Below, one piece after another: positions 908-43,892 of a DNA stretch of 64,000 bases. The DNA is from Oopsacas minuta (Eukaryota > Animalia > Porifera). Below the pieces are notes generated by a model, which searched no databases, was not told the origin of the DNA, and saw only the letters and a program-made list of their open reading frames with translations. The DNA lies in contig JAKMXF010000297.1 in assembly GCA_024704765.1 (NCBI GenBank), forward strand, positions 1-64,000. The letters run 5' to 3'. The position numbers and the translations under genes are program-made. Numbering within the stretch: position 1 is the stretch's first letter; each line of letters begins with the position of its first letter.

Positions 908-3900
908 ATGAGTGATCCAATTGAATCTAATAAGGGAGTAACTCCTGATGATAACAGTACAGCTAAGACTTATGAGTTACCTTCTAATGAGACTAAGATA
1001 TCAGACAAAACTTCTACAGTAGATACCGCCCTCTCTTTTGATAAATTATGTGTACATTCTGATTCAGAATCCTCTGGAGATGAAATTACAGCTTTTGATA
1101 GAATTCGTGCATCAAGTGATTCAGATGAAGGAGAAGCTACGAAGACAATAAAAGCGATTTCTGTATCTAAAGAGTTACCTCCAGTACCTGTAACTCTATC
1201 TACCCCGGTTACTGAGACTGAAGAGGTTAAAGTAGAAGAGACATTGCCAGAAGACATGCTTGAAGAAACTGTGAAAAATTCTGAAGTTACGAAAGAGATA
1301 ATCGAGGCCAAATCACATAACAATACTGATGTATCATCTATCCAAGAACCAAACGTTAGTATCCTACGTACACTGTTATGAAGATTATGAATTATTCAAT
1401 TCGTGCTGAATTGTAGAGATTTGGATTTATGTAATTTCTAATTAGAATACACCTGACAAGAAAGTCGTTGTAGAAGATGAACAAAAGAGCAAGGAAGAGA
1501 GCGATAAAATCCAACCTGGTGTATCTAAAGATAAACCCAAATCCCCCGAGGAGAAGAGTAGTATCCAGAGTACAGGCGATTGGAATGAGAGCGAGAAGGG
1601 AAATAAATATTCTCAAAACAAAGATTTTTCTAGAGAGAAAGGAAAACCACGGAAATCCTACCCAGAGGTTTGTCACTTGATTGTATATACTGTTAAATTA
1701 TGTTAATGTAATTTCATGCTAGGATTCCTTTCGAGATGGAAACAAAAGAGAGAGAGGTAAAGGTAGAAGTAATCGTGATGATAGAGGAGTACGGAGAGAA
1801 AATTACGGACATGATGATAGATTCTACGTTTCTCCAGATACGAGGACAAACGAACCTGAGTTCGATTCTAATGTGATACAAGGACGTTCTCCTCCTACTC
1901 GCAGTTGGAAAGGAACAAGAGGAAGGGGAGGAGAGGGCAAATGGAAACATGACAAATTCTATGAAGATGAACAAGGACCTATCGCTGTGGTAATAAGATA
2001 ATGTTTTACCTTTTCTTACGGATATTATATATTAACAATTTACAGGAATCTACTAACAACAGTTATCCTTCCTACTCATCTCCTCAAAGGTTAGTTTTAA
2101 TTAATTTTATTATGATATACTCTAAAATATAATTATTCTATAGTGTTAGTCAGAGTCAATATCCCTATAAGAAGGGGAGAGGACGTGGTAAGAAACAGTA
2201 CAGTGATCAATCCCCCATCCCAGGGTTCCAGCGTAACTCACCCCGACAGGAGAGGAGAGGGAGAGGGAATCCATATAAAGAAGAATCTGATGTATACTCT
2301 TCTAGTACTCGTCCAAATAGAGGGAGAGGAATTAACAGGTACTCATTGTACACAACTACCTATATACATACAATATATTATCAATATGCTGTAGATATAG
2401 TAATTATAAAGAAGATAATTCTGGAGTGTATCACTCAAAACCGATCGTATTTGTCTCTCAGAATAAGAAGATTGAACCTCCAACTGATAGACACAAGGAC
2501 CAGGATAATACTAGGTAACAACTGTCTATGTCTATATATCTTACACGCTTATCATAATCCCGTTAAAATATGCAGGACCTATAATCAAAATGTCAACTCG
2601 ACGTTTGTAATGATTTAAACATTCGCACTAATACAAAAATTAAAATGTTCAGGAGGTCCGTATTTGTTCATGATTCTACATTTATCGATTGGAAGGCTGA
2701 AAAGTTCTTCAAAGATTTCGAGAAGGATCTTCTCCTCTTATTCGTATTCGCCATACAAGCGAATTGTTCTGCTTCTTGATTGTAAATAGATTTTAGAATT
2801 TTTGCACATTCACTTTGTCCATTGTTAATTAAGTTAGTTAGCGTGTCATACTCCTGTATTGTAGGGCCATCAAGGATCATAATCTTTTCACATGAAGCTA
2901 GCTTTATGAGTCTGTCAGTCAGATATATGACTGTATAACCACTACAATGAGTACGTATAATCTTGTGTACTTTGTCCTCTGTATCTTGGTCGAGAGAATT
3001 AATTGCGCTGTCTATGATTAGAAGTTTGTTTTTCTTAAGGAGTGCTCTTGCTAGAGAAAATAGCTTCTTCTGTCCACCACTAAAGTACTGATTGAATTTA
3101 GACATGTCAAATGAGAATTGTTCTGGTAGAGAACTGATTAGTGACTTCAGTTCAGTAACTTCTAGAATTTCCCATATTTCATTGTCAGTAGCTTTATCTA
3201 ATGGGTCTAGATTTAACCGTAGTGAGCCTGGTAACACCATACAATCAATTGGTACAAGAGAAATGCTATCTCTAAGGACATTTTGGTCCATCTTCGTGAT
3301 GTCCGTATTGTCTATTTTAATTGTACCACTGAACTCGCTCAAACACGTGAGGGCAGCCAAAACAGCTGATGCATTCTTACCCACTATGCCAATCGTCTCT
3401 CCGGAGTTGATAGTGAATGATACTTGTTGCAACAAGTTAGGGAGGTAAGGTGCGAAACAGAATATTACGTCATCAAACTCAATAGTTGGATCGATAGGCC
3501 ATTTAGAGTCAACTTTAATCGGTTCATCTCTTTTTGCTTTACACGGTAAATTCCTATAACTTAGAAGTCTCTGTACAGATATCATCTCATTCTCAACCTC
3601 AATACTTAGTAACATCCAGTGTTTTAACATCCATAGAGCGAGGATCATTTGTCCTAGAGTTGTAGCACTTAAGGATTCTTCTTCTGCATGAACTTTAAGA
3701 ATAACAGCTGTTACAAGCGCAAGAGTACATATACCCAATATCCCAACTCTAATACCCACCCAGATATTAACCAGATGGTTACTGTAGTATGCGTTAGAGT
3801 AATTGTCTTGACATTTTATGAAGTGTGACATCAGTTTATTTTGACAGTGATGAGACTGTATAGTCAGTATACCATTGACAGTTATGTTACACTGTGAATA

Positions 3901-6900
3901 GAGAGGTATACATAGTTTGGATTCAAGAGAACGTACTGATCTGGATGTTTTAAGATAGATCCATCTGAATATTAACAACAAACTAACTATGACTATGATG
4001 GAAGGAATTAGGATTACTTGGTTTATAGAGAATGTAAGTGCTATTACCCCCACAGCCTGGAAGGTTAGGACTGTGAAGAAAGTGAAATGGTATGGGAGTA
4101 ATTCGTCACATACTGCTATATCTTGAATAAAACGATTCACTATAGTACCTACGGGAGTGCGGAGGAAGAATGAACTTTTAGCTTTCAGGACTGAATAGAA
4201 CATTCCATCATGTAGAGCATCTGAGCATCTTAACAGAATGAATATTATCATAACGCAGAGCAGCAAGTAGCAAATACAAGATAGAGCAACGAACACCGAT
4301 ACTACGATGTAGGCTTTCCATTCTTGGTTATCGATTATCAAGGAAGCGTTAACTGTTGCATTTCCTGTTCTAACACTTGAGAAACTTGGAGTGCTTGGTG
4401 GTAGGAAGAACCATCCAACGAGAGATATGATACTGCCGCTTTCAGCTAGCAGAACAAGAATTAATAGGAAGTATAGTACAGCTACGTTAGTACCTGACAT
4501 TAAGTATGTTATGTACGTCCTGATTGAGATATTGTGCACTTTCTCGTCTTCCTTCACTTGATAAATCTTTTGCCAGTTATCAATACCATCCATATCCATA
4601 GTTGTGGTGATATTTATAGATTTCTGTTTCAACATTCTGAAATTTCGTATCAAAGATTTTCTACGACTTAACTGATCTACTTTGTTTCCTGATTCTGGAA
4701 TCTCTTCATCGTCACTTAGAACTTTTTGAATCATACAGATAATGTCTATCTCTTCATTCTTCATTTTTATTTCAAACATTACAAGGTTTAGAATTTCTTG
4801 CTGATTAGTTGCAATCAGTACAATTTTATCAGTCAAGACTTCAGTTATCAAATTCTTGAATATTTTAATTGCAGGTTTAAGTTCGATAATGCTAAATACC
4901 TCATCCAATAAGTAGATATCAGCTTTCTTGTAAATTGCCCTAGCGATTGATATCTTCATTGCTAGAGGGCCTTTAATTCCGCCCTCATCCATAACCTGAG
5001 TACTATCAGCAAGATTAGAATATTTGAATTCTTCCTCGATTCCACACAATTTTTTTACTTTTTCATACCATACTTCATCTATTTTCTCACTAAATATTAT
5101 ATTTTCCTTGATATCACCATCAAACAACCATCCTTCTTTCGGTACAAATACTACGGTCCCTTTCTTGTATATTTCGAGATTTTCAGGGATATCCAGTTCG
5201 CCGAATATAGACAGAAGTAAATCCGAGTTTCCGGCAGTGATATTACCTGATATTCCTATGACGTTCTTATTCTCTCCTGCACTTATTATAATTGAATGAG
5301 AGTTCTCGCTCTTTGAACATATTTTGATAAAAGCTTTTTTATCTAATTGGACTAAGGAAGTTCCATTTTTTAGATTCTGTTTCTCTGCTGTTTTAGATTT
5401 GAGTTCGTTATTGTCGCTCTGTCTGGAATTCTTGATAGTTTCGTATTCAGGCGAGTCTAGCAATGCCGCAATCCTCTTGAGAGATAAATTTACTTCTTTA
5501 ATCAAATAGATAGCGTAGTTAAATTCTAGAACTAGCGTTGAGCTCAGTTGTGCAAACATTAAGAACCCTGCATTCACTTGACCAGCTGTGATTTCTTTAT
5601 CAGAGATTATGGAATAAGTTATAGCAGTAAGGTAGATTGAGACAGTAGGTCCTATGAAGAAGAAGAAAAGTTTGAGTGCTCGGATTAGGCTGGCTTTCTG
5701 GAGAAATCTATCTTCTTTGAATTTAGTTTGATAGACAAGTTTGGTTATTGGTTCCTCCCAAGCTAATAGTCTCACGAGATTGAAGTTAGCAACAAGATTT
5801 TGTACAATATCTACTCTCTTGTCTCCATAGTGCAGCATCTTTTTGCGTATTGTTTTAAACTTTTTTGAGAATGAGAGTTGTATTACTGAGATAATAGTTA
5901 GGAATAAGATTCCTGGTATAACGGAGCAGTATAGCTCCAACCGGTTCCACATAAAGAAGATAACTGTTCCCACTTCAATTGGTGCTATCCATAGAATATG
6001 GAGGGTGGCTATACCTTCACGGAATATTTGTGTGTCAGATGATATTAGGTGGATTACATTGAAATCTCGCAATGCTTTACTTTTGATTTTCAACAATTTT
6101 CTGTAGATAATAGATTCGAACACTATCCTCAGATAAGTAGAACTGAAAGCATCAAAGTATGTTTTGAGATTTGAAGTGACCAATTCTCCAAAAGTGGCTC
6201 CTATTAGTACACATGCAGTTAGTGTAGTACTGCAAATTGAAGTTTCCAGATTCAGGGGTGATGTCAATTGATTTGTCGTTATATTTGAATGATTCGAACT
6301 GGATAATACAGTGTAGCTGTTGTTGCAATACATCTTTTGAGTTACGAGGGCTGCTAGTAATAAATCTTTTATCAAATTGAGGGAATGTTCTAGAAACATG
6401 AATACTCCTGTTATAAAGAAGTTGATACAGACAGAAGTAATTAATATCCACTTTAGAATAAGTACTGTGTTCCTATTCCCTGATGTTTGCGTATGTTTCG
6501 AAATGAAATCCCAATCATGTTCGATTTTCCTATTTATATTAGCTCCTCTAAGCTGTTGTCTTACTTTACATAGATCTTGGTCTTTTAAATTCCTACGGAC
6601 TCCTTTGATAAATATCATATCTATTAAAAAGTCTGCAAAAATTTCCTTGAATCTGATTACACAATTCATTTTTCAATTCTTTAATTATCAGGATGAGAGA
6701 ATTAAAATCTTTATTATCAGGATGACCATTCTGGTATTTATATTAATTTGCTGTCAGTATGGTTTCTAACTATAGCTATCACATCGCAACACATTTGTAC
6801 TTTTATCAGATCCTTTGAACACTTCTAATCAATCTCAAAAGCTCTCATCATTTCAGGATGATTAATCCTTGATATCCCATCCAATAAGATCTATTGTATT

Positions 6901-8579
6901 ACACTATAATTCTCTTTTCCACAAGATTCTGTAGATTTCTTTAGTCTTATCAACTTATTCAAATGTTTTAGAACTACCTTGAACGTAGATGATGCTGTCA
7001 ATAGCGATTATATTCAACCTAGTTCTAGTACTGCTCTTCCCTCCATCTCTGTCTTTTCTACAAAGCCTGAAATTGGTTTGTTATTTATTTATCAGCTAAC
7101 TCCTATTTTGTGATATTTTTATAGTTCGAGGATCAATTAGAATTTGTCATCTTGATATTTATTGATTTGTTTAAGAAATTACGTCACACGAACTCTGAGA
7201 CCACACATATTTTAACTATAAATTTAGAGTGTGAATACGAAAAATATGGTGAAATCAAATACTTTCATAATTTTGTTTCCAAGACATGCAGCAACCTAAA
7301 CGTGCTCCTCAGATGAAATACGGGCCTTACAACAACAAAAAGGATACTGAGAAGTACACTACTACCTCGAACTCCTCGTATACAGGGTTAGGTAGAGGAA
7401 AGGGAAAGATTTTGCATCCGGTCGCGTTACTCCAGAGAGGGCAGCAATATAAAAGACGTAAGTAAGGTAGCAACTTAAGTGGAAGGGGCAATGCAAACTG
7501 CCCACCTTTCTCTTAATTTACTTTAACAAGAAATTTTAGATTTCTATTTTGTCAGTAGTATATTGGTTGTACCTCTATCTAGCTACTGAACCTGTCAATT
7601 ATGAGTATGAGAAAGAGTTTGTACCAAAGAAAGACCCGAAAGAACCTATCTCCCTTACTCCTGATTCAAATCCTTCATTTCCCTTTACTAAATCTGAACC
7701 TCTACATAAACCCGAGCGTTATTCTACTCAGAGAATGAAGCAAGCACAATCAGCTGATCATAACAATGTAACAACTTCTAACGTGGGTATTCCTGTTATG
7801 AATGCTAACTCTCCTAATCCTGGATTAAACAGACCTCCTAGCACTCAAGACCAAGGTACTTAAGTAATATAATACATAATATATATTATTAATACTAATA
7901 ACATTATTTATTTATTTATTTCTCTTAACAAAGGGTACAACGCATCTATGAGAATAGGAGAGCACCCACAACAAGAAACACGATCTTCCATGATGGATGT
8001 ACCGTATTCTGAATTCTATCCCACTCCATACAAGGTATGGCTTTACAAACTATAAACCTTATGTATACTTATATGTTATTTTCTGTATTTTAGGAAGAGA
8101 TGGTAGGAAATCAAATGTCTGCAATGCATCCTTTCAACATGATGCCAGGTAATATGTCTATAAATGTGTAAATACAAGATATTATCTATCTATCTATATA
8201 TATATATATATGTTATTGCTAGATTACATGATATCACCTGATGTCATGAAGGAAGGGGACTTCCAACAGATGCAGTTCCCTCCTTTCATCCCACAAGAGA
8301 TGACAATGAACATGAAGGGAGCACCCAATATGATGGGAGGTAGTTGCTTCAAAATACTAGTTTGATTTGATACACGTTTTTATGACAATTTATTATTTCA
8401 CACCAGGTATTCCTTACATAAGCAATCCTCCTGAGTATACGATGGGAAGTGAAGTTCCACCCAATTTACAATCTGATTTATTTGTTCCAATGCAAAGGTA
8501 AAGCAGTAAAAACACTAATTATATAAATGAATACAATCATTAATAAGATTTATTTCATAGTTATTATCCTCCAATCTAA
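908..8579 (+). CDS. CASC3: CASC3/Barentsz/MLN51-like exon-junction-complex protein, about 15 exons, host of a nested ABC gene
   Basis: Phase-consistent GT-AG exons: 908-1354, 1446-1667, 1723-1989, 2046-2089, 2144-2338, 2395-2514, 2576-2602, [intron 2603-6971], 6972-7075, 7284-7457, 7583-7855, 7934-8034, 8094-8148, 8223-8339, 8407-~8497, 8561-8579. The protein has an acidic N-terminus, a Btz-like HDDR...GKWKHDKFYEDEQGP segment (cf. GRWEHDKFREDEQAP), a downstream RYSTQR motif (cf. RYSSQR) and a P/M/Q-rich tail ending YYPPI. Confidence 0.8.
2668..6669 (-). CDS. ABCC4/MRP4-like short ABC-C protein (TMD1-NBD1-TMD2-NBD2), single exon, degenerate NBDs, nested in CASC3 intron
   Basis: 1333-aa uninterrupted ORF. 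ABCC-type motifs include LHILWIAP, WEEP, FFLRTPVGTIVNRF, SVQRLLSY, WP..PTIEF and LRLNLDP. No TMD0. Walker A, Q-loop, Walker B and H-loop are altered. Confidence 0.9.
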   Translation of the reverse strand: MNCVIRFKEIFADFLIDMIFIKGVRRNLKDQDLCKVRQQLRGANINRKIEHDWDFISKHTQTSGNRNTVLILKWILITSVCINFFITGVFMFLEHSLNLIKDLLLAALVTQKMYCNNSYTVLSSSNHSNITTNQLTSPLNLETSICSTTLTACVLIGATFGELVTSNLKTYFDAFSSTYLRIVFESIIYRKLLKIKSKALRDFNVIHLISSDTQIFREGIATLHILWIAPIEVGTVIFFMWNRLELYCSVIPGILFLTIISVIQLSFSKKFKTIRKKMLHYGDKRVDIVQNLVANFNLVRLLAWEEPITKLVYQTKFKEDRFLQKASLIRALKLFFFFIGPTVSIYLTAITYSIISDKEITAGQVNAGFLMFAQLSSTLVLEFNYAIYLIKEVNLSLKRIAALLDSPEYETIKNSRQSDNNELKSKTAEKQNLKNGTSLVQLDKKAFIKICSKSENSHSIIISAGENKNVIGISGNITAGNSDLLLSIFGELDIPENLEIYKKGTVVFVPKEGWLFDGDIKENIIFSEKIDEVWYEKVKKLCGIEEEFKYSNLADSTQVMDEGGIKGPLAMKISIARAIYKKADIYLLDEVFSIIELKPAIKIFKNLITEVLTDKIVLIATNQQEILNLVMFEIKMKNEEIDIICMIQKVLSDDEEIPESGNKVDQLSRRKSLIRNFRMLKQKSINITTTMDMDGIDNWQKIYQVKEDEKVHNISIRTYITYLMSGTNVAVLYFLLILVLLAESGSIISLVGWFFLPPSTPSFSSVRTGNATVNASLIIDNQEWKAYIVVSVFVALSCICYLLLCVMIIFILLRCSDALHDGMFYSVLKAKSSFFLRTPVGTIVNRFIQDIAVCDELLPYHFTFFTVLTFQAVGVIALTFSINQVILIPSIIVIVSLLLIFRWIYLKTSRSVRSLESKLCIPLYSQCNITVNGILTIQSHHCQNKLMSHFIKCQDNYSNAYYSNHLVNIWVGIRVGILGICTLALVTAVILKVHAEEESLSATTLGQMILALWMLKHWMLLSIEVENEMISVQRLLSYRNLPCKAKRDEPIKVDSKWPIDPTIEFDDVIFCFAPYLPNLLQQVSFTINSGETIGIVGKNASAVLAALTCLSEFSGTIKIDNTDITKMDQNVLRDSISLVPIDCMVLPGSLRLNLDPLDKATDNEIWEILEVTELKSLISSLPEQFSFDMSKFNQYFSGGQKKLFSLARALLKKNKLLIIDSAINSLDQDTEDKVHKIIRTHCSGYTVIYLTDRLIKLASCEKIMILDGPTIQEYDTLTNLINNGQSECAKILKSIYNQEAEQFACMANTNKRRRSFSKSLKNFSAFQSINVES

Positions 8580-8639
8580 GGCCAGGAAGGGAGAATAAGA
8601 TCCGCTCTACTCTACTTTGGTTGGTTTGTTAAATGTTAA

Positions 8640-8790
8640 AATCTTTCAAAAAACCTTTCAAAATATTTTACAAAACATTTCCCCATCTAGGACAATTGAC
8701 TCCAAACCTGCTCCAATGCACCTCCAAACGATAACTTTCCCCTAATTCTCACAATTGTATATAATCCCTTGGTTGCATAAGGAATATTTC
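8640..8790 (-). mobile_element. Possible heavily decayed Tc1/mariner transposase fragment
   Basis: The minus strand reads *GKVIVWRCIGAGLESIVLDGEM, resembling the Tc1 GGSVMVWGC...G.L..IDG.M motif. It is flanked by stops and no TIRs were found. Confidence 0.25.
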
Positions 8791-9047
8791 CAAGCGATTA
8801 CTGCTAGGAGTTTATCTAAAATGCACCTCATGGGTTGTGATGTGATACTATGTTACTACCAGGTCTGATCATTCATTATTATTTGACCTATTTTTGTATA
8901 CCAATTTTCTTCTATCATATTTTGCTACACATATTCATGGGATTTACATTTCGGAATTACATTTCAATCATTACACAGTAATTACTTCAATAATTTGCAA
9001 GTGTGGTATATTTAAAATTAAGGTATTAAACGATAATTTAGTCTGTG

Positions 9048-11744
9048 ATGTTGAATATTAAGCTGAACTATGTCTTCTCCAATCTGTGTGGATGTATGTA
9101 CAAGCAAGGTAACATTATATTCACACCAGATGGAAATTCTGTACTCAGTCCTGTGGGGAACAGAGTAACACAGTTTGACCTTAAGAACAATAAATCTACA
9201 ACTTTTCCTTTCCAAAATAGGAAGAATATTTCTCGAATCGCTCTCTCTCCAGACGGAGATCTACTTCTTAGTGTTGATGACGACGGAAGACTTATTTTAG
9301 TTAATCTTTATCGCAAAGTTGTACTACAACATATCAATCTTAAACTTCCAGTAAAAGACATAAAATTTAGTCCAGACGGTTCGCTAATTTCTGTCACACA
9401 TGGTAGAATACTAGATATTTGGTATAGTCCTACAAAGGTGAAGAAGTTTGCTTCTTTCCAGCGTTTCAACAGTTTTCGTGGTCATAGTGATAAGATAACT
9501 TGCATTGACTGGTCTTCTGATTCTGAGTTTGTTGCTACTGGTTCGGCTGATATGACCGTGAGAGTATTTTCAATGCATAGAATATACGGATATAGATCTA
9601 TCCGTTTAGCTGGACATAGAAATACACTGGTAGGATGTTTCTTTGAGAAGAATTCCCTCAGTTTGTATACTTTATGTAAAGGGTCTGTTTTACTGTATTG
9701 GAGTTGTGATGTTAGTTTAGAAGAGGCTAGAGAGTTAAGGGAAAGAGCTGTAACAGAGGAAGGAAGAAAACTGGGATTTGAGCAATCTAGTGAAAAAGAT
9801 TTGTTCTTCTTTGATAAAGAACGAGACGAGGAAGAAGCTAGTAGTTCTGATGAAGATAATAAATACGAATCTATTGCTAAGAGAATAAAGAAATCTAATT
9901 CGATAGTATGGACACGATCTGATAAACATATACTTAATACAGAGCATCACTCTACTATCAGTTCTGCTTGTTATAGCTCTCATATCCGTATATTGGTTGT
10001 AGGATTTAAGAATGGAGTGTTTGTGTTATATGAAACTCCATCTCTTGTTCAAATACACTCCCTGTCTGTTTCTCAGCACGCGATTAATTCTGCGGCTCTC
10101 AACACGTCAGGACAATGGTTAGCTTTGGCTTCTAAGACTCTAGGACAGCTAGTTGTTTGGGAATGGTCCTCTGAAACGTTCATTCTGAAGCAGCAAGGTC
10201 ACTCCCTGGGTATGTCTTGTCTCACTTACTCTCCTGATGGAGAGGTTATTGTAACAGGTGGACAGGACGGTAAAGTCAAGTTATGGAGCACTGCGACTAG
10301 TTTCTGTTTCGCTACTTTTGGGGAACATACCGGTCCCGTTACTGGGGTGTGCTATAACGCAGTTGGACAAGTAATAATATCTGCCTCCCTTGATGGGACA
10401 GTCCGTGCATTCGATACAAAGCGTTATAGGAATTTCCGAACCTATACCTCCCCAGATCCAGCTCAATTCTCCTCGCTAGCTGTTGACTTTTCAGGAGAAC
10501 TGATTTGTGCGGGGTCACAGGACACTTTTGAGATTTATCTCTGGTCGCTTGAGACCGGAAAGCTCCTAGAGATTTTGAGGGGGCACACGGGTCCGATCAG
10601 CTGGCTACAATTCAGCCCTCTGGGTTCCCTCCTCGCTTCCAGTTCTTGGGATAAGAGCTACCGTCTCTGGGACCCGATCAATCCTGAGGGGAATAACGAA
10701 CATGTCGAATTTGTCACAGAAGCAGTCGCTCTCTGTTACAGTCCAAATGGGAAGGAATTAGCTGTCAGTACACTAGATGCACAAATAACCTTCTGGAATG
10801 TTGAAGAATCACTTCAAACAGGAAGTATAGAATGTAGAAGAGACATCTGGAGCGGTAGGAGAACAGAAGATCTGGTTACCACTAGACATCTTGCTAGCAC
10901 CAAATGTTTCACTTCAATCGCTTACACAGCTGATGGTAGTTGTTTGCTTGCAGGAGGAAGATCTAAATATATATGTATTTATGATGTACCCACCAAGATA
11001 CTGCTACGTAGATACCAGATCAGTGGAAACCGATCTTATGACGCAATGCAGAGGTATCTGGACAGCAGGAAGATGACAGAGGCAGGACCTGAAGATCTGA
11101 TAGAAATATCATCTGAGTCTGAGAGTGAAGATATTCAGTTACCAGGAGTGGTTAAAGGGGAACATAGCAGTCGTAAGACACGTCCTGAAATCGAGACAAG
11201 GGGTGTTCAGTTCTCTCCAACAGGTCTGTCGTGGGCAGCTGTTACAACTGATGGTCTTATGGTATACTCTTTGGATCAAGGATTGACATTCGATCCGTTT
11301 GAGTTAGGTACTGATATTACTCCAGGAGCTGTCATACAAGCTATATTAAGTGAGCATTATATGGAGGCTCTAGTGTATAGTGTACATTTGAACGAGCAAT
11401 CCCTGTTACAACGAGCTATTGAGAGTGTACCTACTGATCAGATAAAGTTGATTATGAGTACTCTACCATTCAGATATATTCCTAAACTCATCCCACACTT
11501 CGCACACTTTCTCAGCTCCACCACACATCTACAATTCTATATGCAATGGATTCAATCTCTACTGTTATATCATGGACGTAGTATTCAAGGAGAGATCGTA
11601 ACATTAGCTCCCGGACTCACTGCGCTACAGAACTCTATCCATGAGAAGATGGCAGATCTCTCCTCTCTAACTGATTCTAACAAATTTAGACTTGACTACT
11701 TTATCATGGTTCAACAGAGGGATAAAGCTGTTAATAATACGTAG
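9048..11744 (+). CDS. PWP2: Periodic tryptophan protein 2 (WD40, U3 processome UTP1), single exon
   Basis: N-terminus FSNLCG.MYKQGNIIFTPDGNSVLSPVGNRVTQFDLKNNKS is characteristic of PWP2. Multiple WD40 repeats and a Utp12-type C-terminus. First ATG is 9048 (the track starts at GTG 9045). Confidence 0.95.
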   Translation: MLNIKLNYVFSNLCGCMYKQGNIIFTPDGNSVLSPVGNRVTQFDLKNNKSTTFPFQNRKNISRIALSPDGDLLLSVDDDGRLILVNLYRKVVLQHINLKLPVKDIKFSPDGSLISVTHGRILDIWYSPTKVKKFASFQRFNSFRGHSDKITCIDWSSDSEFVATGSADMTVRVFSMHRIYGYRSIRLAGHRNTLVGCFFEKNSLSLYTLCKGSVLLYWSCDVSLEEARELRERAVTEEGRKLGFEQSSEKDLFFFDKERDEEEASSSDEDNKYESIAKRIKKSNSIVWTRSDKHILNTEHHSTISSACYSSHIRILVVGFKNGVFVLYETPSLVQIHSLSVSQHAINSAALNTSGQWLALASKTLGQLVVWEWSSETFILKQQGHSLGMSCLTYSPDGEVIVTGGQDGKVKLWSTATSFCFATFGEHTGPVTGVCYNAVGQVIISASLDGTVRAFDTKRYRNFRTYTSPDPAQFSSLAVDFSGELICAGSQDTFEIYLWSLETGKLLEILRGHTGPISWLQFSPLGSLLASSSWDKSYRLWDPINPEGNNEHVEFVTEAVALCYSPNGKELAVSTLDAQITFWNVEESLQTGSIECRRDIWSGRRTEDLVTTRHLASTKCFTSIAYTADGSCLLAGGRSKYICIYDVPTKILLRRYQISGNRSYDAMQRYLDSRKMTEAGPEDLIEISSESESEDIQLPGVVKGEHSSRKTRPEIETRGVQFSPTGLSWAAVTTDGLMVYSLDQGLTFDPFELGTDITPGAVIQAILSEHYMEALVYSVHLNEQSLLQRAIESVPTDQIKLIMSTLPFRYIPKLIPHFAHFLSSTTHLQFYMQWIQSLLLYHGRSIQGEIVTLAPGLTALQNSIHEKMADLSSLTDSNKFRLDYFIMVQQRDKAVNNT

Positions 11745-12783: not shown

Positions 12784-12963
12784 TAATTTTATTAATGAAT
12801 TCTTAACCAATGGTTATGATCACTTCAAATTAGCAAATAATTTAAATAAATTTAATATATTTTCTCGGCAGTATTATCCTTACAAATGGGCTAACATTAT
12901 AGCTATAAGAGGAAAGTCAAGTCATTTGTTTATCTAACACACCGTCTGTATAGCTTGTATAGC

Positions 12964-23033: not shown

Positions 23034-31624
<8,591 letters not shown>

Positions 31625-31749
31625 AGGTTTAAAAGAGGGAACCGAATACACAAACACAGATTTTCACCCATAATACAATCATTATTGAGAATATTTCATT
31701 AAATAGTTATTGCTAGTAACAAACTTTCTGCATAAAATAATCCAATAAT

Positions 31750-31752
<3 letters not shown>

Positions 31753-31791
<39 letters not shown>
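31753..31791. repeat. (AAT)13 microsatellite between the convergent CWC15 and DCUN1D 3-prime ends
   Basis: Perfect AAT run read directly from the sequence. Confidence 0.95.
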
Positions 31792-31792
<1 letters not shown>

Positions 31793-31854
31793 TATCATTA
31801 ACCATAAAATACAATTAGCATGAATTCACAGCTTTTGGTAAGTTGAGGTGAAGA

Positions 31855-34800
31855 TTATGGGAGTGTTTTCTTTGGAAGTTTTTCTAAGGCAAATTCTACA
31901 AACTCATCAATAAGGACTGGCCATGCACCTAAAAGATAGAGTAATAAGAGTATGTTGTCAAATTATATGCAGTATATAAACCACATCAATGTTGCACTAC
32001 ACTCTCCTGATGAGGATTAATAAGGGAAGATTGAGGTATTTCTCACTTAAGCTTATCGCTATTTAACATCTCTCATTAATAAAGAGAGTTTATAAGAGTA
32101 CATAGATTCCATACGATATTCTCTCAATAAACCCTTATGTGGAAACTGCAATTATTAATTCATTTATCATGTTTCTTTACCTTCTTCATCATAGTTTGAC
32201 ATGTTATCGTCAATCTGAATGCTAAAGTCCAGCAATAAGTTCCAAGTATCTCTTGGGATTGGTTTCTTATGATGGTTCTAGAAAATACCGATATTAGCAA
32301 CTATTAGTATACTTTATTTATATGACATCTAGCGTCTAATAATTACTTTTTAGAAAATGAATATTTGAAAGGTTATACGTTATTCGTATACATAGAAGTT
32401 CAGAGTATGTTTACTTGAAACTTAGTAATTTTCTTTGCTAAACAAGGCTGAATTATATAGTAAATGGTTGTGGAATTATATTATATAGAATTATATAGAA
32501 TTATATTGGACGTTATTGGCTAATTGATTTGCTTTTGTCCTGAGAATTATCAAAATTAATTGAAATATTTTCATAGATAATTTGAATTAACTTCTAGTAA
32601 TTTATAAAACTTACTTGAATATATTCAACCCATAGGTCATAGAACTTGAAGCGAGGTCGTAATATAATTTGCCAATATGCGATTGCCATTTCCATTTCTA
32701 TAGACATTGCATTTGTTTAACTATTATACATCATTTATCAAAAACATGCAATAATAATGGATTATCTCTTGTTAAGTAAGTTCAATATTTGATGTCAGTC
32801 TGGTCATGTGGCAAATGAAATCTATAATTTTACCAAAATGTTTGTTATCATAAATAAGATTTTTCAAAGTACAACAGTTTAATATTTTGTGAGGGCAGAG
32901 ATTAAATTCTATTCTTCCTCTACGTGTTAATTCTGCACCCGTGAGAACATTATTTAAATATTAATATAGACTTGCATTCCCTAAACTTTCAATATTATCT
33001 AGGGATTAGTTACTTCCAACAAAAGATTGTTAGGTTATACAATTATTGAGATAACTCAATAGGTCTAGACCAATAGCACAGATTATATATATATAAATTG
33101 TATATTGAGTTTAATCAATGGCGATGATACCTCATAACATGGATTCAGATGCTAATACAGGTAATTTACCACAGATGAGAAAAAGTAGTGGAGGGACTAA
33201 TGCAATAGACACATTACCATGGTATTATCCTGGAACAGATCGCCATGCAGCAGAATGTGTGTTAAAGACACACGACATAGATGGTTCATTCATTATAATA
33301 AAAGAACGAATTATTGGAGATTATGAGTACTATGACTTGTGCGTATGGAATGTAGGAACTCCGTCCCATTTCCAAGTAAGGTATCGGAGGGATGTGGACG
33401 AGATAGAGTTCGGGTTGAAGAAATATAGTTTGTCAACTTTTAAACAACAGTTTGAGCGACCTAGTCGAATCGTTAAAAGCGATAGAGACGTAATCCTCCT
33501 CAAACACCCTCTCCCTAACAATGTGAGGGAGCCAATCGAAATATGGGATGTAGTTATCACTCAAGATCTAGTGAGGTCAGATAAGGAAATAAGATTCATG
33601 AGAGTGAAATCAGATCCTAATATTCTATCTAGTTGCTCATTGGGAGTAAAGGGTGGATATCTGATTAAGCGAGGCCATGTTAGGAAAAATTGGAAGAGGA
33701 GATGGTTCGTCCTGGATAAAAATATTTTAAATTATTACGAAATGAAACCAAATCTTAATGATAACCCAAATCCTAAACCAAAAGGAATTATCGATCTATC
33801 AGAAACGATTCAATTCACTGCAGAAGATCATTCTGTAAAACAACCATACTGTTTTGCAATTCATGTCTCGAAGAAAATATACTTGATTAGCGCTGAGACT
33901 GAGATCGATTACAAATCCTGGGTGGAAGCTCTGAAGACTGCTATAGAAAAATACCAGGATACGGACAAGAGAAATGTATCCAGCGATTTTGTATAATAAA
34001 TTACTTTTAAAGATTAGATTGTTTATACTTTTTCTTATTTGTTTTAACCAAAGTTCTATTCATTATTATATTTTGTAATATTATCTACCTAAGTATCTTT
34101 GATCCGGATTCTTTGCAAATTCAAATGCGAATTGGTAGAAACTTTTAAACTTATCACTATTCTCTAATTCTCTCTCAAACTCGGGTATTTTCCGCTTCAA
34201 TTTGTCTATATTATCACACCTAATGGAATAATACATAAATATCATGTACGGTAGAAACCGTTTGACCGGAATAGTTTTATCCAGACTTGTTTATTTTTAT
34301 GTAACATAACTTACCCACAATTCTTCATCCCTTCAATAAATTCAGTGCGAGTAAATACGCACTGCTCCTTAGCTTTGAACTTCCATGCAATTATTAATAC
34401 TGATATGCTAGTTGGATCTAAACACAGGTCGTTCAAGAATTCTGTTATCCCAGTAGCCATCATCTTATCCCCTTCTCTCTCTTGTATTGTTCCTAACAGA
34501 GGAAATTTTAATATTGTTAAAAAATTATAATTTTTCTCATAAAATGTTCCTACTTTTGTATTTTTCAAAGATGAGAGCAAGCTTTTTGAAATCCGCGGGC
34601 TCATGTACTATGTATTTGTCTTGGTTCTGGAAAAACTCGTCTACTGACCTGTCTAGTTTCCAATCAAATTGAGAGAGACAGTTTATAGCACTCTTCTCGT
34701 CACAAGCAGTTACACTCCTGAATTGGGCTACAGTTTCCCTCTGAGATGATTTCAGCTTTCCCTATATAGTATTGTATACTTTTTAGATGTGGTATAGTGT

Positions 34801-36781: not shown

Positions 36782-36890
36782 CAGGGGTGCCGAACTTTCC
36801 AGGGGGGTTTACACATATATTTTGTATTAGCTCTATAAGGATGTAACCAAACTAGGGGGCTCGACTGCGCCACCGGGTTCGGCGCCTATG
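36782..36890. mobile_element. Short GC-rich element with inverted termini (MITE-like)
   Basis: CAGGGGTGCCGAAC ... GTTCGGCGCCTATG match at 11/14 as an inverted pair. No TSD seen. Confidence 0.4.
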
Positions 36891-37359
36891 GTCATTTGCG
36901 TCTGTATGTTTGTCCTTGTCAAGGAAAGGATAATAAGAACTTTGGAATTCGAAATGAAATTGCGAAAGTCTTATAGCTATAAAATTATTGTCTAAAATTC
37001 AAGAAAGTAAATGGAATTCAATAAAATCGGATTCAGGGTTACCCCCTAATAAACGTTCATTAACCTTTACATATGTTTTTTAGGTTTAGAAATTAGCAAT
37101 AACCAAATCCAATACCATGATCCAGGCATCAATGGATTACCCTCGGTATAACTATTAATAAGTTATTCCTCAGGACTAAATTATAAATCAACCTAAAAGA
37201 TTCAGGTATTTCCTAGATCATTTGCTAAGGAGTTTCAAGCTCATCCTGAGACGTACTGGTTCTTGTTGAATTATACTATCTGCGAAAATTTTATACAAAT
37301 AGTTACTCTATACGAAATATCTCCGAACACCTCCATAATTGTACCTTCCAAAATGGTAC

Positions 37360-37420
37360 ATATATGTTACCGTCCAAATTGAGTGTTTGGCGGATACTCA
37401 ATTTGGACGGTAACATATAT
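37360..37420. repeat. Perfect 25-bp inverted repeat with an 11-nt loop, followed by (TA)n
   Basis: ATATATGTTACCGTCCAAATTGAGT (37360-37384) and its exact reverse complement (37396-37420). Confidence 0.95.
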
Positions 37421-37606
37421 ATATATATATCAACCTATAGTCAAGAGATCCAGGGAATTAGCAAATGGGGGGTTGTTATTTGTTAAGTCTCGCAGTACCA
37501 AAATACAAATATGATAGCGTGTACACATATAAGAGAATGCGTTATGAATACAGAAGATAAATAGGTTAAAAGAATTAATCGAATATAACTAATTCAAAAT
37601 TAAATA

Positions 37607-38182
37607 TTAATCATAATGTGTATTTGAAAAACGACCTAACACAAATCCAATTACAATCCCTAAGTTTGCACCAATGATGACGTCGGCTAAGTAATGTCTC
37701 TTCATCAGTATTCTAGAGAGTGATAGCACAAATGCCCACGTAATCAGAATCTGAGCATAACTTGGCATTACAAAGAAAGCATATGCAGCAATGAAGAAGC
37801 TTCTAGAGGCATGTCCAGAAGGGAATGAGTAACGATCAATTGAAGCAGTAGCGATCATATCTTCTATGTTATCTCGGGGTCGTGGGCGTCTCACAATTGC
37901 TTTCGTTAGACCAACAATAATAACATCCAGAATTAGCCCTATTAGAAAGAAGTTGGGTCTCATTTCGGCGTTACCCCACCTGTAAACATTCCAGAGGAGA
38001 GCCCCTGAAATCCAGATTAGTCCATGTCCAGATATCTCAAGGAGAAGAAGTATCTTTCTAGCGAATTGATCTTCATAAGTCAATCTAGCTGGATGAGCAG
38101 TCCTTATTATAAGTGAGGAGAGTGTCTTATCAAAGGAAAGGAATGAAAAGTAGAAGTATTTAGAGTAATCAGCTAGAAACAT
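37607..38182 (-). CDS. PLPP6: Polyisoprenoid diphosphate phosphatase PLPP6/7-like (PAP2 family)
   Basis: LEISGHGLIW, KAIVRRPRP, DRYSFPSGHASR and SRILMKRHYLADV (PAP2 C1-C3 motifs). Confidence 0.85.
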   Translation of the reverse strand: MFLADYSKYFYFSFLSFDKTLSSLIIRTAHPARLTYEDQFARKILLLLEISGHGLIWISGALLWNVYRWGNAEMRPNFFLIGLILDVIIVGLTKAIVRRPRPRDNIEDMIATASIDRYSFPSGHASRSFFIAAYAFFVMPSYAQILITWAFVLSLSRILMKRHYLADVIIGANLGIVIGFVLGRFSNTHYD

Positions 38183-38955
38183 TGGTCAGAGGACAGTTCC
38201 TTGGTGACTGGTATACATACAATAGTGCTCAGGTTTTAGATTTCAGCTTATTTATACTGAGTTTATTAATCTTACAAAAGATTTTACCTTCTATAATTTA
38301 AATATTTTAACTTTGATGCAAGTAATTCAATTAAGATCTTATACGCGATAACTATTAATAGTGTGAATCATTCGATGTGTAGCCAGAAGGTTAGACTTTC
38401 AATATTCTGTAGAATCACCTAATGGAGGTCATAATTGGAGAAAATACACATATGGATGAAATTGGATAGTTGGAATGTTCTTAGAAATATTCAAATAAAA
38501 TATTCGAAGCAATCTAGCTTGGTACTCATGAACCAGATGAGTTAAATTACAAGGTTCGTATTCCAGAATGTCTCTACCCATCCATATTTAAAACATTTAG
38601 GTTAATCACGAGCCTTTTGAGAACGTAGGTATAATTTTCATTAATCATCATACGTAATGCATATATTCAGCCCAATTATAGTGAACCGATCACGGCTGAA
38701 GTTTTACGTTCGTAATGTAAAGGAGCACTAAAATTTTACCAACTACGTTTTAACCAATTCCAGTACCAAAAACGAAATTTTATCAACTTTTTTGACGTCA
38801 TAAAATCACACATTTTCCCGGCCGTAAATAGTATTATTAAAATTGGCAGACAATATAATATTCAAACATTGAAAACAGAATAGCTCATAGATAAAACTGC
38901 CATCAATCTATTCTCTATACAATATATCGTTCTATATAGTTACATCTGGGAGTGT

Positions 38956-41900
38956 TTAAATACAACCCATCTCACTCGCCATGTTTCTAAAGTAAGGAGG
39001 GGTTTGATATTTCGTACAAGAAAGTTGAATTTCTTTCGATTCATCAGTAGTTGAATAAGTTTTGCTATCTCTCATATCTTTCCAAGATCCCGAATTAGCA
39101 GGAAGATAAACTGAACATTGAGTTTGTCCCTTAGACAGTGCAGGAGCAACTAAATAAACATCTCCAATCAGGAATTGAGTATTAATAGTGTAAGTACGTG
39201 GGTCCATTGGCCAGACCCACCAGAGAGGGCGTATTATCGGCTCTTGGTTTGTCGTAAACTTTCTGCCAATACAATCCATAGTCTCTTGTACAAGTTTATA
39301 ATGTAATTTACTCATTTCTAGGGAAAAATCTCTTACTTTATCATCATACTGCCATGGAAGTTTAGAAAACTGCATGAATGGTAGAAATGCATTAAGCCCC
39401 ACCCACCTTATGAATAGCTCTTCATCTAACACATCACTACCTAAATCATTATTTGCTATAGCATCTCTTTTATAATTACTTCCTCCTATAGAGCCTGGCA
39501 ATACGAATGGATAGCCAAGGATACTTAGAGTTAGTGTTGATGTCAGTACAGAATGCAGACCGTTATTCAGCCCCCAAGTAGGCTCCTTATCAAGGAGAGA
39601 TACAATCATAGGGTAGCTCTGTGTATCATAACCAACCTGAACTTGAGAAGAAGGGAAGTGACTAGCCAAATCTACATAGAGCTGGGAATACAGGTTAGGG
39701 TGTAGGGAGAGATCACACTGAGGAAGGTAAGTTGACTCTCCTGCATCAAACTTGAACGAATCAATAGAATAATCGTTTGAGAAATTGGTAAGGCGTTCTA
39801 ATAACCAATCAAAAGTTGTCTGTTTCGTTAAATCAATTAATCCCCCGTATCCTCTCCACCAGCGCACCACCCCAAGAGTATGGTTATCACCTCGACAGAA
39901 CATCCATCTGTTCTGAGTATCCTCAGAGGTTTCAGAGGATAGAGACTCTTGGAAAATATCTGAGTTAATATTCCCGAATGGGTGTATCCATACTGACACA
40001 TTAATGTTTTGATCGTGTATCTGTTGTATCATTGATGCCACATCTGGGAATCTGACAGTATCAAAATCTATTTCTCCATACTTGCTAGAGAATGTATCAT
40101 CTATTTGAATGATGGATGCATTAAATCCCTGACTGAGGATATTATTCAATAGCTCTAGTACATTATCTTGATCTACGTCACTGCGATATTGCTCCCATGT
40201 AGACCATATTGGGCTAGGAAATATATTTATGTTATTATTTACAGAATTGTTCTGTGTAGAGCCTAGCACTCTCTCAAGAAAGTACTTATTAGCTTGTAGG
40301 ATGTTGTCTAACAAACATATCGTAACATTGAGATGTAGATCAGGGGTAGAGGAGGAGGATAAGAGGTATCCGTCGAAGGAAGCTCCCAGACAGAGACGAG
40401 TTTCATGATTACTCATATTCATAAGCTATCATAAATTAATCACAATATTAGACAGTTAGCTACATTTATTATGTATTTATACAACTTACCTGTACGTGCA
40501 GATAGCTCTCATCTGTTTCAGCTATAACAGCAGCTCCTTCACTAGAGAACCAAGCAGGATGCAACACAGGTCCGAACTCTTGTCCCTCTCCCAAGTAGTC
40601 AGTGGTTAGAAAAGGTTTATAGAATTGAGTAGAATTATAATTCAGAGGCCATTGCTGTGAGTAGCTCTCGTAACCCCCGAACCAGTGACCCTCCATGAGA
40701 GAGAAGCAGAGTTCTAGAGAGGTGAAGAGTGTCTCACTTGTGGTAGCTTCCCAGAAGATATGTGTACACACTCCGTCATCTCTATTACTCTCTGACAATA
40801 CCAATGAAGAGTCTGTATAGTTGTACCTTAAACATTTAATATCAATATTACGCACTGACTAGTTACAGTAGAGCTTACCTTAGATGAATACCCTCTCCTC
40901 CTTCCTCATCGTACTTAACTGGAGGGATCTGATCAGCTGATGCAGAAGAGAGAGAACATCGTATAGATTTAGATCCTCTTGATAGAACTAGATTACCGCT
41001 AACAGGGTAGAAAGTCGTATGAGGCAGAGATATCTCATTTGAGATTGGGTCCAGGACTAGCCTTCCAACAGCCAAAAGGACTACACTGAGTACTCCCAGT
41101 ATTACTACACTCCCGAAGAATACAGCCTACATAATCAGGTATAAATATTGTAATCCAATCAGTTACGTCATTTGAGTTGTATATTTATTAAGTTTAATTA
41201 ATTAATTATGAACTAATAATTATACGTATTTTCATAACGTCCATATAATTTCGTGTAATCCGAGTCTATTCACCTAACAGTTTATATAAATTCGTAATAT
41301 ATTAAACAATAAGATACAATTAGAATGGCTACTGCGAATGAATCAGAAGTATCTAATTCCATGGCAATATGTCCAGGATGTCACTGCCTCTACAAGGACC
41401 CCCGGCTCCTTCCCTGCTGTCACTCCATCTGTCTGGAGTGTATAGAAGTTACGAATAATGGACTGAGCAGGTGTCCCAAATGTCACAATGTGTCAGATCA
41501 GAAACCCTCTGATTTGTGTTATGACGTCACTGGAGATAGAGTAGCTAAAGTACAACGGATTAGGGATGAATTGAACAAGTGTAGTCAAATACTTTGCTCA
41601 GATTGTGAAGACGAAACTGATGCTACATATTTTTGTATTACCTGTTCCAACCCATTGTGTGATTTGGATTTTAAGGTACACAAGAAAATGTACAAAAATT
41701 CACATAACCTGGTTTCTATTGATAAAATAAACTCAATAGAACAGTTCTATAATTGGGGAAGTGTTCATGATTGCAAATTCCATCCTAATACAACAGCTGA
41801 TCATTTCTGTACCACCTGTAAATACCTGTTGTGCGGTTCTTGCCTATCTCACCATCATCCGAACCATCAAATGAATGGCCTAGAAGATGCTATAAAGAGA

Positions 41901-43892
41901 GTAACTGAACACTTACAAGCTTATCATAATACTTTAGAAGGACTGAATACAGGGGGTACCTGGGAGCTCAAAAGTTCTTAGAGAAAGTTATAACAATGAT
42001 TGCACATGTTGAAGAGAAATTTGATGATTTGCAAAAGGTTCTAGACGACAGAAAGAGAGAAGTAATGGATAAACTGGACTACATTTATAAAGATACTCTC
42101 TCTTTCATCCAGAAAGGAGAGCTGCAGAGAGAACATGTACAAGATCTGATCACTAAAAGCAAAGCTTACAAAAAGTTGCCAATGAATGGGCATATACTAA
42201 CTGAATTAGAATCAATCAATTCCAAAGTAAACGAACTTCTAGCTGGACTACCTGACAAAGCTAAATACAAGGATATAGACTACATCATGGATCACGACAT
42301 AAAGAGCATTATGAAAGGGCTAGGCTGCTTTAGACTAGAATATACACAAAAAGTACTACCTGTAAACATAATAGATACAAATACTCTGATGTCAAAATAC
42401 AAATTCACTCCATTTACTATGACTAGAGATGATCAAGAAAACATCTACAACTTCACCACAGATTCTCAAGTAGTTGTAATGAATCGAGCAGGTGAAATGC
42501 TTAAACAGTTCAAACCTTCGAATATGCCAGGTCAAGTAAACAGTGGTTATATTCACTGGAATAAGCATCTCCTATATATTGTAGCTGGCAACAATAACAG
42601 TGTTACAGTATGCAATGAGGATGGGAAATTAGTTAAGATATTTGGTAAAGAAGGGAAGAATTCAGGGGAATTTAAGAATCCACTGAGTATCGCTGTGAGC
42701 AATATAAACGGAGATATCTATGTATTGGAAGAGGGAAATAATCGTGTGCAGGTGTTAAATTCTAAATATATTCCCTCCCGTTTTATTGGATATTATATTG
42801 AGCATCCAGGACAGATAAAGAACCCTTGTGAGCTAGCGCTAACAGAAGAAGATCATGTGATTGTAGCACAACGAAATATCCCTAGTATAAATATATACAA
42901 CTCGCAGGGAATAGTGTTAGTACAGTTTGGTAGTACTTCAATTGATGGACTCGTGTTCATGCCTGGAGCAATGTGCATATCTCATACAGGACAGTTACTG
43001 CTAACTGATCTTTTACAGGACCAGATCGTAGTGTATGACAAGGATAAACTGACCATGTGGACGGTAGGCTCTCCAGGGATAAAAAGGGGAGAATTTTCAT
43101 GTCCAGCAGGTATGGTTTGTATGAAAGACGGTACAGTCTATATTTGTGATATGAGAAATCAGAGAATACAGGTGTATAACCAAGATTCTATGATTCTTGG
43201 TGATAACTAATTACCTTTCCTGTATATTACTAGTAGTGAGGATATATTTGTTATTACATTTATAGCGTAGTTTGTGCATGACTTGACTTCTCGGAGCTGA
43301 TTTTGTAATTAGGGAAGAAGATTACTTTACAAATATGATCCATTGTTAAAAATGAGTTTAATGCTTACCACTATATATAATCATAACTTACCCGTTCCAG
43401 ATAGTGTATGTATACATATTTATGCCTTTTCGTCAGTATATCGCGAGCAGAGGAGCCCTCATCAGGAGGATTCGTACCGTGTGGTCTAACACTGTCAACA
43501 CTTGCAGAATATACGTATTCTTCATGGTAAGCAGATTCCTCCAGTGTCAATGTCCTGTATATCTTACCCCTGTGTCTCTTCTTGTTACGAATCATTTCCT
43601 CTTGGGTTTGAGTGTTTCTATGAAAATTAAATGAGTTTCTAATGCTGTCCAATGAATTCCTATGGCTTACTGAATTGCTATGTTCGGGGGATTGATTTTG
43701 TGAGGTCTGGCTTAAAAATGCACTGGTTGGTGCATGTGCTGGGCTATGTAACCCTAAAGGACTTGAATCAACACTATGAACTGTGAACTGTGTTGGTGAT
43801 GAGGCTTGCTCAGAATTCAGCTCAAGGCTTAAATCAGTGTCAGGTGGGTACACACTAATGCTTGGCGATTCCAACGTTACCTGTGTAGTCAT
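38956..43892 (-). CDS. MYORG: MYORG/KIAA1161-like GH31 glycosidase, type II membrane protein, 4 exons, host of a TRIM-NHL gene
   Basis: Exons 43892-43392 (Ser-rich N-terminus, phase-0 donor CGG|GTAAGT), 41126-40879 (phase-0 acceptor, TM helix AVFFGSVVILGVLSVVLLAV), 40826-40490 (HWFGGYE...QWPL) and 40425-38956 (PIWSTW, IQIDD, SFKFDAGE nucleophile motif, ELFIRW, IIRPLWW). Confidence 0.85.
41325..43210 (+). CDS. TRIM-NHL protein (RING, two B-boxes, coiled coil, NHL repeats), nested antisense in MYORG intron 1, with a frame break near 41955
   Basis: RING CPGC...PRLLPCCHSICLEC...CPKC; B-box1 CSDC...FCITC..PLC; B-box2 C.FH...FC.TC..LLC..C...H; NHL repeats (FGKEG..SGEFKNPLSIAV, GEFSCPAGMV...IYICDMRNQRIQV). 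It is split into two ORFs in different frames. Confidence 0.85.

Follow-up and report, generated by a model that had tools for sequence, protein, structure and literature searches.

The window, 64,000 nucleotides of contig JAKMXF010000297.1 from the glass sponge Oopsacas minuta (genome 61.46 Mb, in 365 contigs), contains four genes that each lie antisense within an intron of a different host gene; a further long intron, the fifth, is occupied by a recent hAT transposon. The nesting is confirmed for all four guests, each of whose open reading frames (2668-6669, 25953-27341, 33118-33996 and 41325-43210) is wholly contained within one host intron (2515-6971, 23907-28332, 32698-34088 and 41127-43391, respectively). 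The original prediction, which had placed an antisense cargo in each of the five long introns, is thus borne out, with corrections to the CASC3 intron donor and to the reading frame of the TRIM-NHL guest. Domain searches were run exon by exon on single exons and ORFs. No Rfam match reached the gathering score anywhere in the window, so it holds no known intronic RNA genes.

The leftmost host is a CASC3/Barentsz-like gene on the forward strand, whose region is covered by one sequencing run (X4) that is read as RNA since its joints are GT..AG only. The 5' part of the gene (908-2514) is made up of RNA exons ending at 2087 and then 2142-2336 and 2393-2514; the 3' part (6972-8841, the 3' limit being approximate) comprises exon 6972-7074, intron 7075-7282 and further exons rich in Pro, Gln and Met, with blocks conserved in a relative at 7904-8579 and 8723-8841. 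The RNA contigs carry GT..AG joints at 2087/2142, 2336/2393, 2514/6972 and 7074/7283. The joint across the guest, at 2511(+3) to 6969(+3), skips 4457 nt at a depth of 1312 (the adjoining joints have depths of 1159 and 1793) and keeps the reading frame. Reads spanning the host junction to 6972 were therefore found as anticipated, from 2514 rather than 2602, and the donor previously given at 2603 is wrong; the intron runs from GT at 2515 to AG at 6970-6971. A Btz-like motif is encoded at about 1930-1990 in a domain that is split over small exons, and it scores 15.4 bits (E 0.022), below the Btz cut-off of 22; the PDB matches of this host are human CASC3 chains only, 13 of the 16 residues aligned over the WxHDKF motif being identical, at a weak E of 0.017.

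The first guest, an ABCC-type ABC transporter (2668-6669, reverse strand), is a single 1333-aa ORF that fills 90% of the CASC3 intron. It matches the Pfam ABC_membrane domain and has one ABC_tran match, and its orthologue in a relative (1320 aa) occupies the same position. An RNA contig at 2597-6998 (depth 336; these contigs are strandless) covers the guest, ends 71 nt beyond its stop codon and extends 27 nt into the CASC3 host exon. Host and guest are both present in the one RNA run.

The second host (23034-31624, forward strand) was assembled from splice sites and pieces of the Cwf_Cwc_15 profile, and has eight exons at ~23034-23165, ~23235-23341, ~23870-23906, 28333-28374, ~28921-29004, 30867-~30971, ~31050-31112 and 31553-31624. 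Positions 1-75 and 140-244 of the profile are represented in six exon pieces, with 49 bits for the first exon and 42 for the last (cut-off 30.4), and the gene is identified as CWC15 (Cwf15/Cwc15). Intron 23907-28332 begins with GT and ends with AG; the exons ahead of it encode profile positions 1-39 and 32-75, and those past it positions 140-165, 165-204, 203-220 and 223-244. Its guest (25953-27341, reverse strand) is a single 462-aa ORF with MH1 and MH2 domains. The nearest named relatives of this protein are vertebrate SMAD5/1/9 at ~70% identity, it has a 95% identical glass-sponge orthologue, and its position is identical in a relative; it is a SMAD of the SMAD1/5/8 (BMP receptor-regulated) type. 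The intron without this ORF is still ~3 kb long, of which ~2 kb, on the downstream side of SMAD, is AT-rich and unique, and the surplus may itself belong to the cargo, for example as a long UTR.

The third host (31858-34761, reverse strand) has exons at ~34761-34550, ~34478-34314, ~34220-34089, 32697-~32610, ~32277-32180 and ~31932-31858, defined by splice sites and by UBA_4 and Cullin_binding pieces. The UBA_4 match has an E of 1.4e-11, and the Cullin_binding pieces cover positions 1-118, two of them above the 27.9-bit cut-off; a UBA-like domain followed by a Cullin_binding (PONY) domain identifies this as a DCUN1D (DCN1-like) gene. Intron 32698-34088 has GT/AG ends and the protein reading was checked over the junction, with Cullin_binding positions 1-38 encoded ahead of the guest and positions 35-69, 74-106 and 106-118 past it. 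Exon order is identical in the counterparts L018 and L019. Its guest (33118-33996, forward strand), a single 292-aa ORF, is an SH2-PH adaptor resembling DAPP1/Bam32, with a PH match at E 1.8e-19 and a weak SH2 match at E 0.028, and it lies inside DCUN1D in the same arrangement in four assemblies.

The fourth host (38956-43892, reverse strand) was defined by glycoside hydrolase family 31 (GH31) domains and comparative splice sites. Exon 1 (43892-43392) encodes 167 codons of cytoplasmic tail, exon 2 (41126-40878) opens with a membrane helix, and further exons lie at ~40858-40472 and ~40440-38956. The protein matches Pfam Glyco_hydro_31_2nd and _3rd, its hydrophobic helix would serve as a type II anchor, and its nearest named relatives are myogenesis-regulating glycosidases (35-40% identity), all of which point to MYORG. 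Its intron (43391-41127) holds a TRIM-like B-box/NHL gene (41325-43210, forward strand) at the same position in four species. In the window assembly this guest is not one intact ORF; a frameshift near 41955, between the residues 'GLN' and 'RGY', leaves two ORFs at 41325-41981 and 41996-43210, and orthologues are intact (629 aa) in two relatives. Reading the gap as a small intron was rejected, as the residues that would be removed are conserved in the relative.

Were the two halves of each host separate genes, nothing would be nested, and the hosts would be an artefact of stitching unrelated ORFs together. For CASC3 this is refuted by the RNA joint, and for CWC15 and DCUN1D by a single Pfam domain that continues past each guest. 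MYORG is the host for which such a case could be made: the official O. minuta model (P0124, 680 aa) omits the distal exon and starts at a 5-nt mini-exon at 41171, and the distal ORF is also predicted, in ORF-style predictions, as a stand-alone 173-aa protein. However, the mini-exon is missing from the relative, and exon 2 contains no Met and begins straight after a conserved TAG acceptor. The consensus donor GTRAGT stands at the same codon boundary in four glass-sponge genomes, in which the acceptor is conserved too, and conservation of the distal ORF stops at that donor in all four. Comparison of these genomes suggests that the junction 43392/41126 spans TRIM-NHL and that the 5' end of the official model is probably wrong. 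Among 1.84 billion representatives, no spliced transcript joining MYORG exon 1 onward was found, and the junction is unproven by that search; a search with the large GH31 exon likewise returned no transcript-derived full-length glass-sponge MYORG, although it brought up the official 680-aa model. The earlier claim that the host halves are single genes thus stands, by RNA in CASC3, by continuous domain profiles in CWC15 and DCUN1D and by conserved splice sites in MYORG, and it is very improbable that they are unrelated ORFs.

The remaining long intron, CWC15 intron 29005-30866, contains an element at 29084-30797 that lies antisense to CWC15. Its 16-nt inverted ends (29084-29099 and 30782-30797) start with CAG, and it is flanked by a perfect 8-bp target-site duplication, TCCTATAG, at 29076-29083 and 30798-30805. 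At least 40 genomic copies were scored, with identities of 79-94%. Short CAG-starting inverted ends, an 8-bp duplication and many dispersed copies are all features of the hAT superfamily, and the transposase domains of that superfamily (BED finger, DUF4371 and hAT dimerisation) are matched in a fuller copy (L013) as zf-BED, DUF4371 and Dimer_Tnp_hAT, each match being weak (E 6.6e-4 to 2.3e-3). The window copy is ~590 nt shorter inside, its own ORFs have no Pfam or PDB match and, unlike an autonomous hAT, it is internally deleted and non-autonomous. The identification as an antisense hAT element, proposed from the sequence, holds on the strength of the inverted ends, the duplication and the copy number. 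Without the element this CWC15 intron would be 140 nt long, and in three other species it is 57, ~140 and ~500 nt.

The nests themselves are old. DAPP1/DCUN1D and TRIM/MYORG are common to four assemblies and the other two pairs to at least two, and the synteny comparison with related species that had been proposed as a check found the whole 45-kb region collinear in a relative, un-nested genes included, with 66-80% DNA identity in the coding blocks. All four nests predate the split from the other glass sponges.

In other animals, most nests are attributed to the insertion of a gene into an intron. It had been proposed that each guest reached an already existing intron as a retrogene or as a copy carried by a transposon. 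The guests are indeed intronless, and the hAT element shows that introns in O. minuta receive insertions. However, intronlessness is uninformative here, since 9,872 of 16,340 O. minuta genes (~60%) are single-exon (PMC10282587), as are un-nested neighbours such as WDR3, copine and the sulfotransferase. The guests also show neither a parental paralogue nor a poly(A) remnant. The best paralogues in the O. minuta genome are 28% identical for ABCC, 33-36% for DAPP1 and 27% for TRIM-NHL, none of these three thus exceeding 36%, and 61-69% for SMAD (domain pieces only, none above ~69%), so no close paralogue, and no intron-containing parental copy, was found there for any guest. In none of the four does an A-run of eight or more occur from the stop codon of the guest up to the following host exon, which is weak evidence given the age of the nests; as these are shared with relatives of 66-80% coding identity, the signature of an insertion would have been erased long ago. 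With the single-exon state the default and no close paralogues, arrival by retroposition or with the help of a transposon is unsupported, and we regard it as unlikely.

A second route would be host extension, in which MYORG, at least, gained a new 5' exon on the far side of the adjacent TRIM-NHL gene and so enclosed a gene that never moved. The 167-aa tail encoded by exon 1 is matched, among the 1.84 billion representatives, by three glass-sponge genomic ORF-style proteins only (169-186 aa), and MYORG relatives are mostly 640-790 aa long against the ~870 aa implied here. N-terminal tails evolve fast, however, so that missing outside homologues are weak evidence, and extension of the host is about as doubtful as retroposition. 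The arrival route of each guest, like the selective reason for its orientation, can be proposed here only as inference.

Introns in this genome are short. Those measured by RNA are 54, 56 and 208 nt, and a mean of 341 bp has been published (PMC10280926). Minus their cargo, four of the five long introns would be 455, 512, 379 and 132 nt. That every long intron holds something follows from this, because only cargo-bearing introns exceed 1 kb, and the "packing rule" that had been read into the window is mostly an ascertainment effect, largely circular and already published. The four nests and their antisense cargo stand, and a rule beyond chance does not: at a nested rate of 12.4%, four or more nested genes among ~21 has P = 0.26, so that four nests in 43 kb is within chance at the published glass-sponge density. 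For all four guests to be antisense, P = 0.06 if the two orientations are equally likely, and P = 0.16 if the human proportion of 63% applies.

The density used here is that of Aphrocallistes vastus, in which 2432 genes, 12.4% of the total, are nested, a share that its authors consider normal across animal phyla (PMC10282587). That sponge belongs to the same phylum and class and, as in the window, has a compact genome in which introns are short, most genes have a single exon and some genes lie within introns of others; many of its nested genes are conserved with O. minuta (PMC10282587). The four pairs of the window are not described in that paper, which does not report strand orientation and in which the words antisense and opposite strand are absent. 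That nesting is very common in glass sponges has nonetheless been published before, and the window is a clean example of it rather than a new rule. Human nested genes, in the figures cited within PMC3192792, are 63% antisense and 41% single-exon, and intronic genes make up ~6% in Drosophila melanogaster (PMC3786989). Guests in human and Drosophila are, as here, mostly on the opposite strand and often single-exon, and the rationale given is identical, namely escape from host RNA-processing signals and from transcriptional interference. Their host introns, in contrast, extend over tens of kilobases, much of it empty, whereas in the window 63-90% of the intron is guest ORF in three of the four cases, and in three of the four what remains has the size of a normal intron.

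The locus is best explained, and with considerable confidence, as four ordinary cases of intronic nesting, all of them ancient, together with a recent hAT insertion, in a genome, that of O. minuta, which is compact. Introns would be held short genome-wide, exceeding 1 kb only where they carry functional cargo or a transposon too young for deletion. Cargo on the same strand would burden the host pre-mRNA with poly(A), terminator and splice signals of its own, and cargo on the opposite strand would be invisible to host RNA processing, hence the antisense orientation; this poly(A)/splice-signal reason is the standard explanation and is plausible here. The guests would be single-exon as most genes in this genome are, and not as retrocopies.

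It could be argued instead that the nesting is adaptive, with shared chromatin or antisense transcriptional interference coupling host and guest so that the pairs are conserved. Two to four glass-sponge assemblies share each pair, and the guests are tightly packed; for three of them no AATAAA or ATTAAA lies between the guest and the next host exon, so their transcripts may overlap host exons, which leaves room for host-guest interplay, and the ABCC contig does reach into one. The collinearity of the whole region, un-nested genes too, shows however that conservation is not confined to the nests. Deletion of a nested gene is also difficult without damage to its host, so that it would persist neutrally, and the host-guest pairings have no functional theme. 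Coupling of this kind seems improbable, more so than either route of arrival considered above. A broader conjecture, offered with little confidence, is that hexactinellid nests are nearly exclusively antisense, far beyond the human 63%, and that selection has long kept the pairs together; antisense nests would then be a favoured form of packing during compaction and not a neutral by-product, and some guest transcripts would overlap host exons and couple expression.

The pattern being published, the gain is practical and lies in annotation and in test cases. New are the small details of the 5' end of the MYORG model and the frameshift in TRIM-NHL in the assembly. In the O. minuta annotation no more than 83 genes are listed as nested, compared with the 2432 of A. 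vastus, low counts having been put down to annotation settings (PMC10282587), and the window alone holds four real ones, which supports a nest-aware, RNA-guided re-annotation of this genome. The four pairs, whose junctions are exactly placed and which are conserved in as many as four species, are ready cases in which the antisense bias of glass-sponge nests may be tested against that of other animals.

All four guest genes named in the original prediction are recognized by Pfam: an ABCC-type transporter of 1333 aa (2668–6669, minus strand), a SMAD protein with MH1 and MH2 domains (25953–27341, minus strand), the DAPP1 adaptor with a PH domain and a weak SH2 match (33118–33996, plus strand), and a TRIM-NHL gene with B-box and NHL matches (41325–43210, plus strand). 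The window as a whole is ~36% G+C and dense in long single ORFs. The transporter has a single recognizable ABC_tran domain (residues 1080–1223), and its first nucleotide-binding region gave no Pfam match. The polyadenylation motifs AATAAA and ATTAAA are absent between the guest stop codon and the next host exon for ABCC (2515–2667), DAPP1 (33997–34088) and TRIM-NHL (43211–43391); these three genes either form their 3′ ends at other signals or extend into the host exons.

The ABCC gene lies in an intron that is visible in RNA. This region is present in four sequencing runs, one of which (X4) behaves as RNA in that its joints are all of the GT..AG form. In X4 a joint from 2511(+3) to 6969(+3) skips 4457 nt at a depth of 1312 (the CASC3 joints beside it have depths of 1159 and 1793); the CASC3 intron is thus 2515–6971 and is constitutively removed, and the CASC3 frame is uninterrupted over the 2514/6972 joint. 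The intron had been predicted at 2603–6971, of which the acceptor is correct but the donor lies 88 nt from the one used in the RNA. A 4402-nt RNA contig (2597–6998, depth 336) spans ABCC and ends 71 nt beyond its stop codon; such contigs are strandless, and this one fits the ABCC guest mRNA. The same contig extends 27 nt into the CASC3 exon (6972–6998), so that reads cross the intron-exon boundary; these could derive either from unspliced host RNA or from an ABCC transcript initiated within the host exon or further out. The host is putatively identified as CASC3 from a Btz match below threshold and from human CASC3 as the sole PDB match.

For CWC15 and DCUN1D, the host exon pieces were searched singly against Pfam. 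Those of CWC15 match Cwf_Cwc_15 positions 1–39 and 32–75 ahead of SMAD and positions 140–165, 165–204, 203–220 and 223–244 past it; those of DCUN1D match Cullin_binding positions 1–38 ahead of the PH gene and 35–69, 74–106 and 106–118 past it, and across the nest the DCUN1D translation is continuous through its PONY motif. GT/AG ends are present at all the predicted junctions of both genes. These two hosts, CWC15 on the plus strand and DCUN1D on the minus strand, are arranged tail to tail with ~230 nt between their stop codons (31624–31858), a gap in which T/A-rich triplets form a long run near 31740–31800. Without its cargo, the SMAD-bearing CWC15 intron retains ~3 kb, of which most is unique and AT-rich, with one 150-nt dispersed repeat in addition. 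Between the CWC15 exon and the SMAD stop codon (23907–25950) lies ~2 kb of this unique sequence (~30% G+C), which may be a long SMAD 3′ UTR; the spacer here in a collinear glass sponge relative is similar in size, without sequence similarity to that of the window. The dispersed repeat, downstream of SMAD at ~25359–25511, has at least 40 copies at 73–86% identity and looks like a MITE or SINE.

The MYORG host has a competing gene model. Its exon at 41126–40878 has a membrane helix at its start, no Met, and a TAG acceptor directly before it, and the distal ORF (43892–43392) ends in phase 0 at GGTAAGT. In three other glass sponge assemblies the distal ORF ends with GTRAGT at the same codon boundary, where similarity ceases, and the helix exon follows directly after TAG, with TRIM-NHL between the two exons on the opposite strand. 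The official O. minuta MYORG protein (P0124, 680 aa) instead begins "MT" by way of a 5-nt mini-exon (ATGAC|GT at 41171) that splices into, and so clips, the membrane helix. A protein named glucosidase of Oopsacas minuta matches the GH31 exon of the window at 100% identity. The relative has no counterpart of the mini-exon, which is therefore probably an artefact of annotation concealing the nest, and on these sequence comparisons the predicted 43392/41126 junction spanning TRIM-NHL is very likely right. The guest itself, predicted to be complete, is in the expected place but is not a single ORF in this assembly: compared with the intact 629-aa orthologue of a relative, the frame changes near 41955, through two bases too many or one too few. 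A small intron there is excluded, as it would take out conserved residues; the change reflects an assembly error or else a true lesion. The orthologue of a third species (L017, a hifiasm-style contig, 8597–10457) carries its own frameshift together with an in-frame stop, and the intact 629-aa ORF is kept in two other species; these lesions may reflect guest decay in some lineages or assembly errors. The NHL-repeat part has at least 103 matching places in the O. minuta assembly, mostly single open frames of ~420–440 aa, and by sequence the NHL family appears to be greatly expanded in this genome.

The fifth long intron, in CWC15, had been said to hold an antisense hAT element, and it does. The element (29084–30797) carries 16-nt inverted ends and is flanked by a perfect 8-bp duplication (TCCTATAG), and at least 40 copies exist at 79–94% identity. 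The window copy lacks ~590 nt of internal sequence; in a fuller copy, the strand antisense to CWC15 encodes zf-BED, DUF4371 and hAT dimerisation domains. With the element taken out, 140 nt of intron remain, and the same intron is 57, ~140 and ~500 nt in three other species.

Window positions 1800–45200 are collinear with a 47-kb stretch of the relative's 1.02-Mb contig, with coding blocks 66–80% identical in DNA and introns that do not align. All four nests are found there, and DAPP1 in DCUN1D and TRIM-NHL in MYORG are found in four assemblies. The abundance of nested genes in glass sponge genomes, and the conservation of many of these genes, are already known from the Aphrocallistes vastus paper (PMC10282587); the same paper regards the O. 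minuta count of 83 nested genes as an annotation artefact, and it does not report on the strand bias of nested genes.

To the original prediction, four nests in ~43 kb looked like a packing rule and not an accident. At the published nested rate of 12.4% (PMC10282587), at least four nested among ~21 genes has P = 0.26, and ~127 windows of 64 kb with at least four nests are expected per genome; this density is within what chance allows. For four of four antisense, the human rate of 63% (PMC3192792) gives P = 0.16. Arrival of the guests by retroposition is unsupported: their single-exon structure is uninformative because 9,872 of 16,340 O. minuta genes are single-exon (PMC10282587), a search of the O. 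minuta genome found no close paralogues of the guests, and no poly(A) remnants were found past their stop codons. Cargo accounts for the length of four of the five long introns, which without it measure 455, 512, 379 and 132 nt; introns seen in RNA here are 54–208 nt, and the mean intron of this genome is 341 bp (PMC10280926). With these four cargo-free remainders in the normal intron range, the observation that long introns always hold something reflects the way introns of this sponge become long, and not the suggested packing rule.
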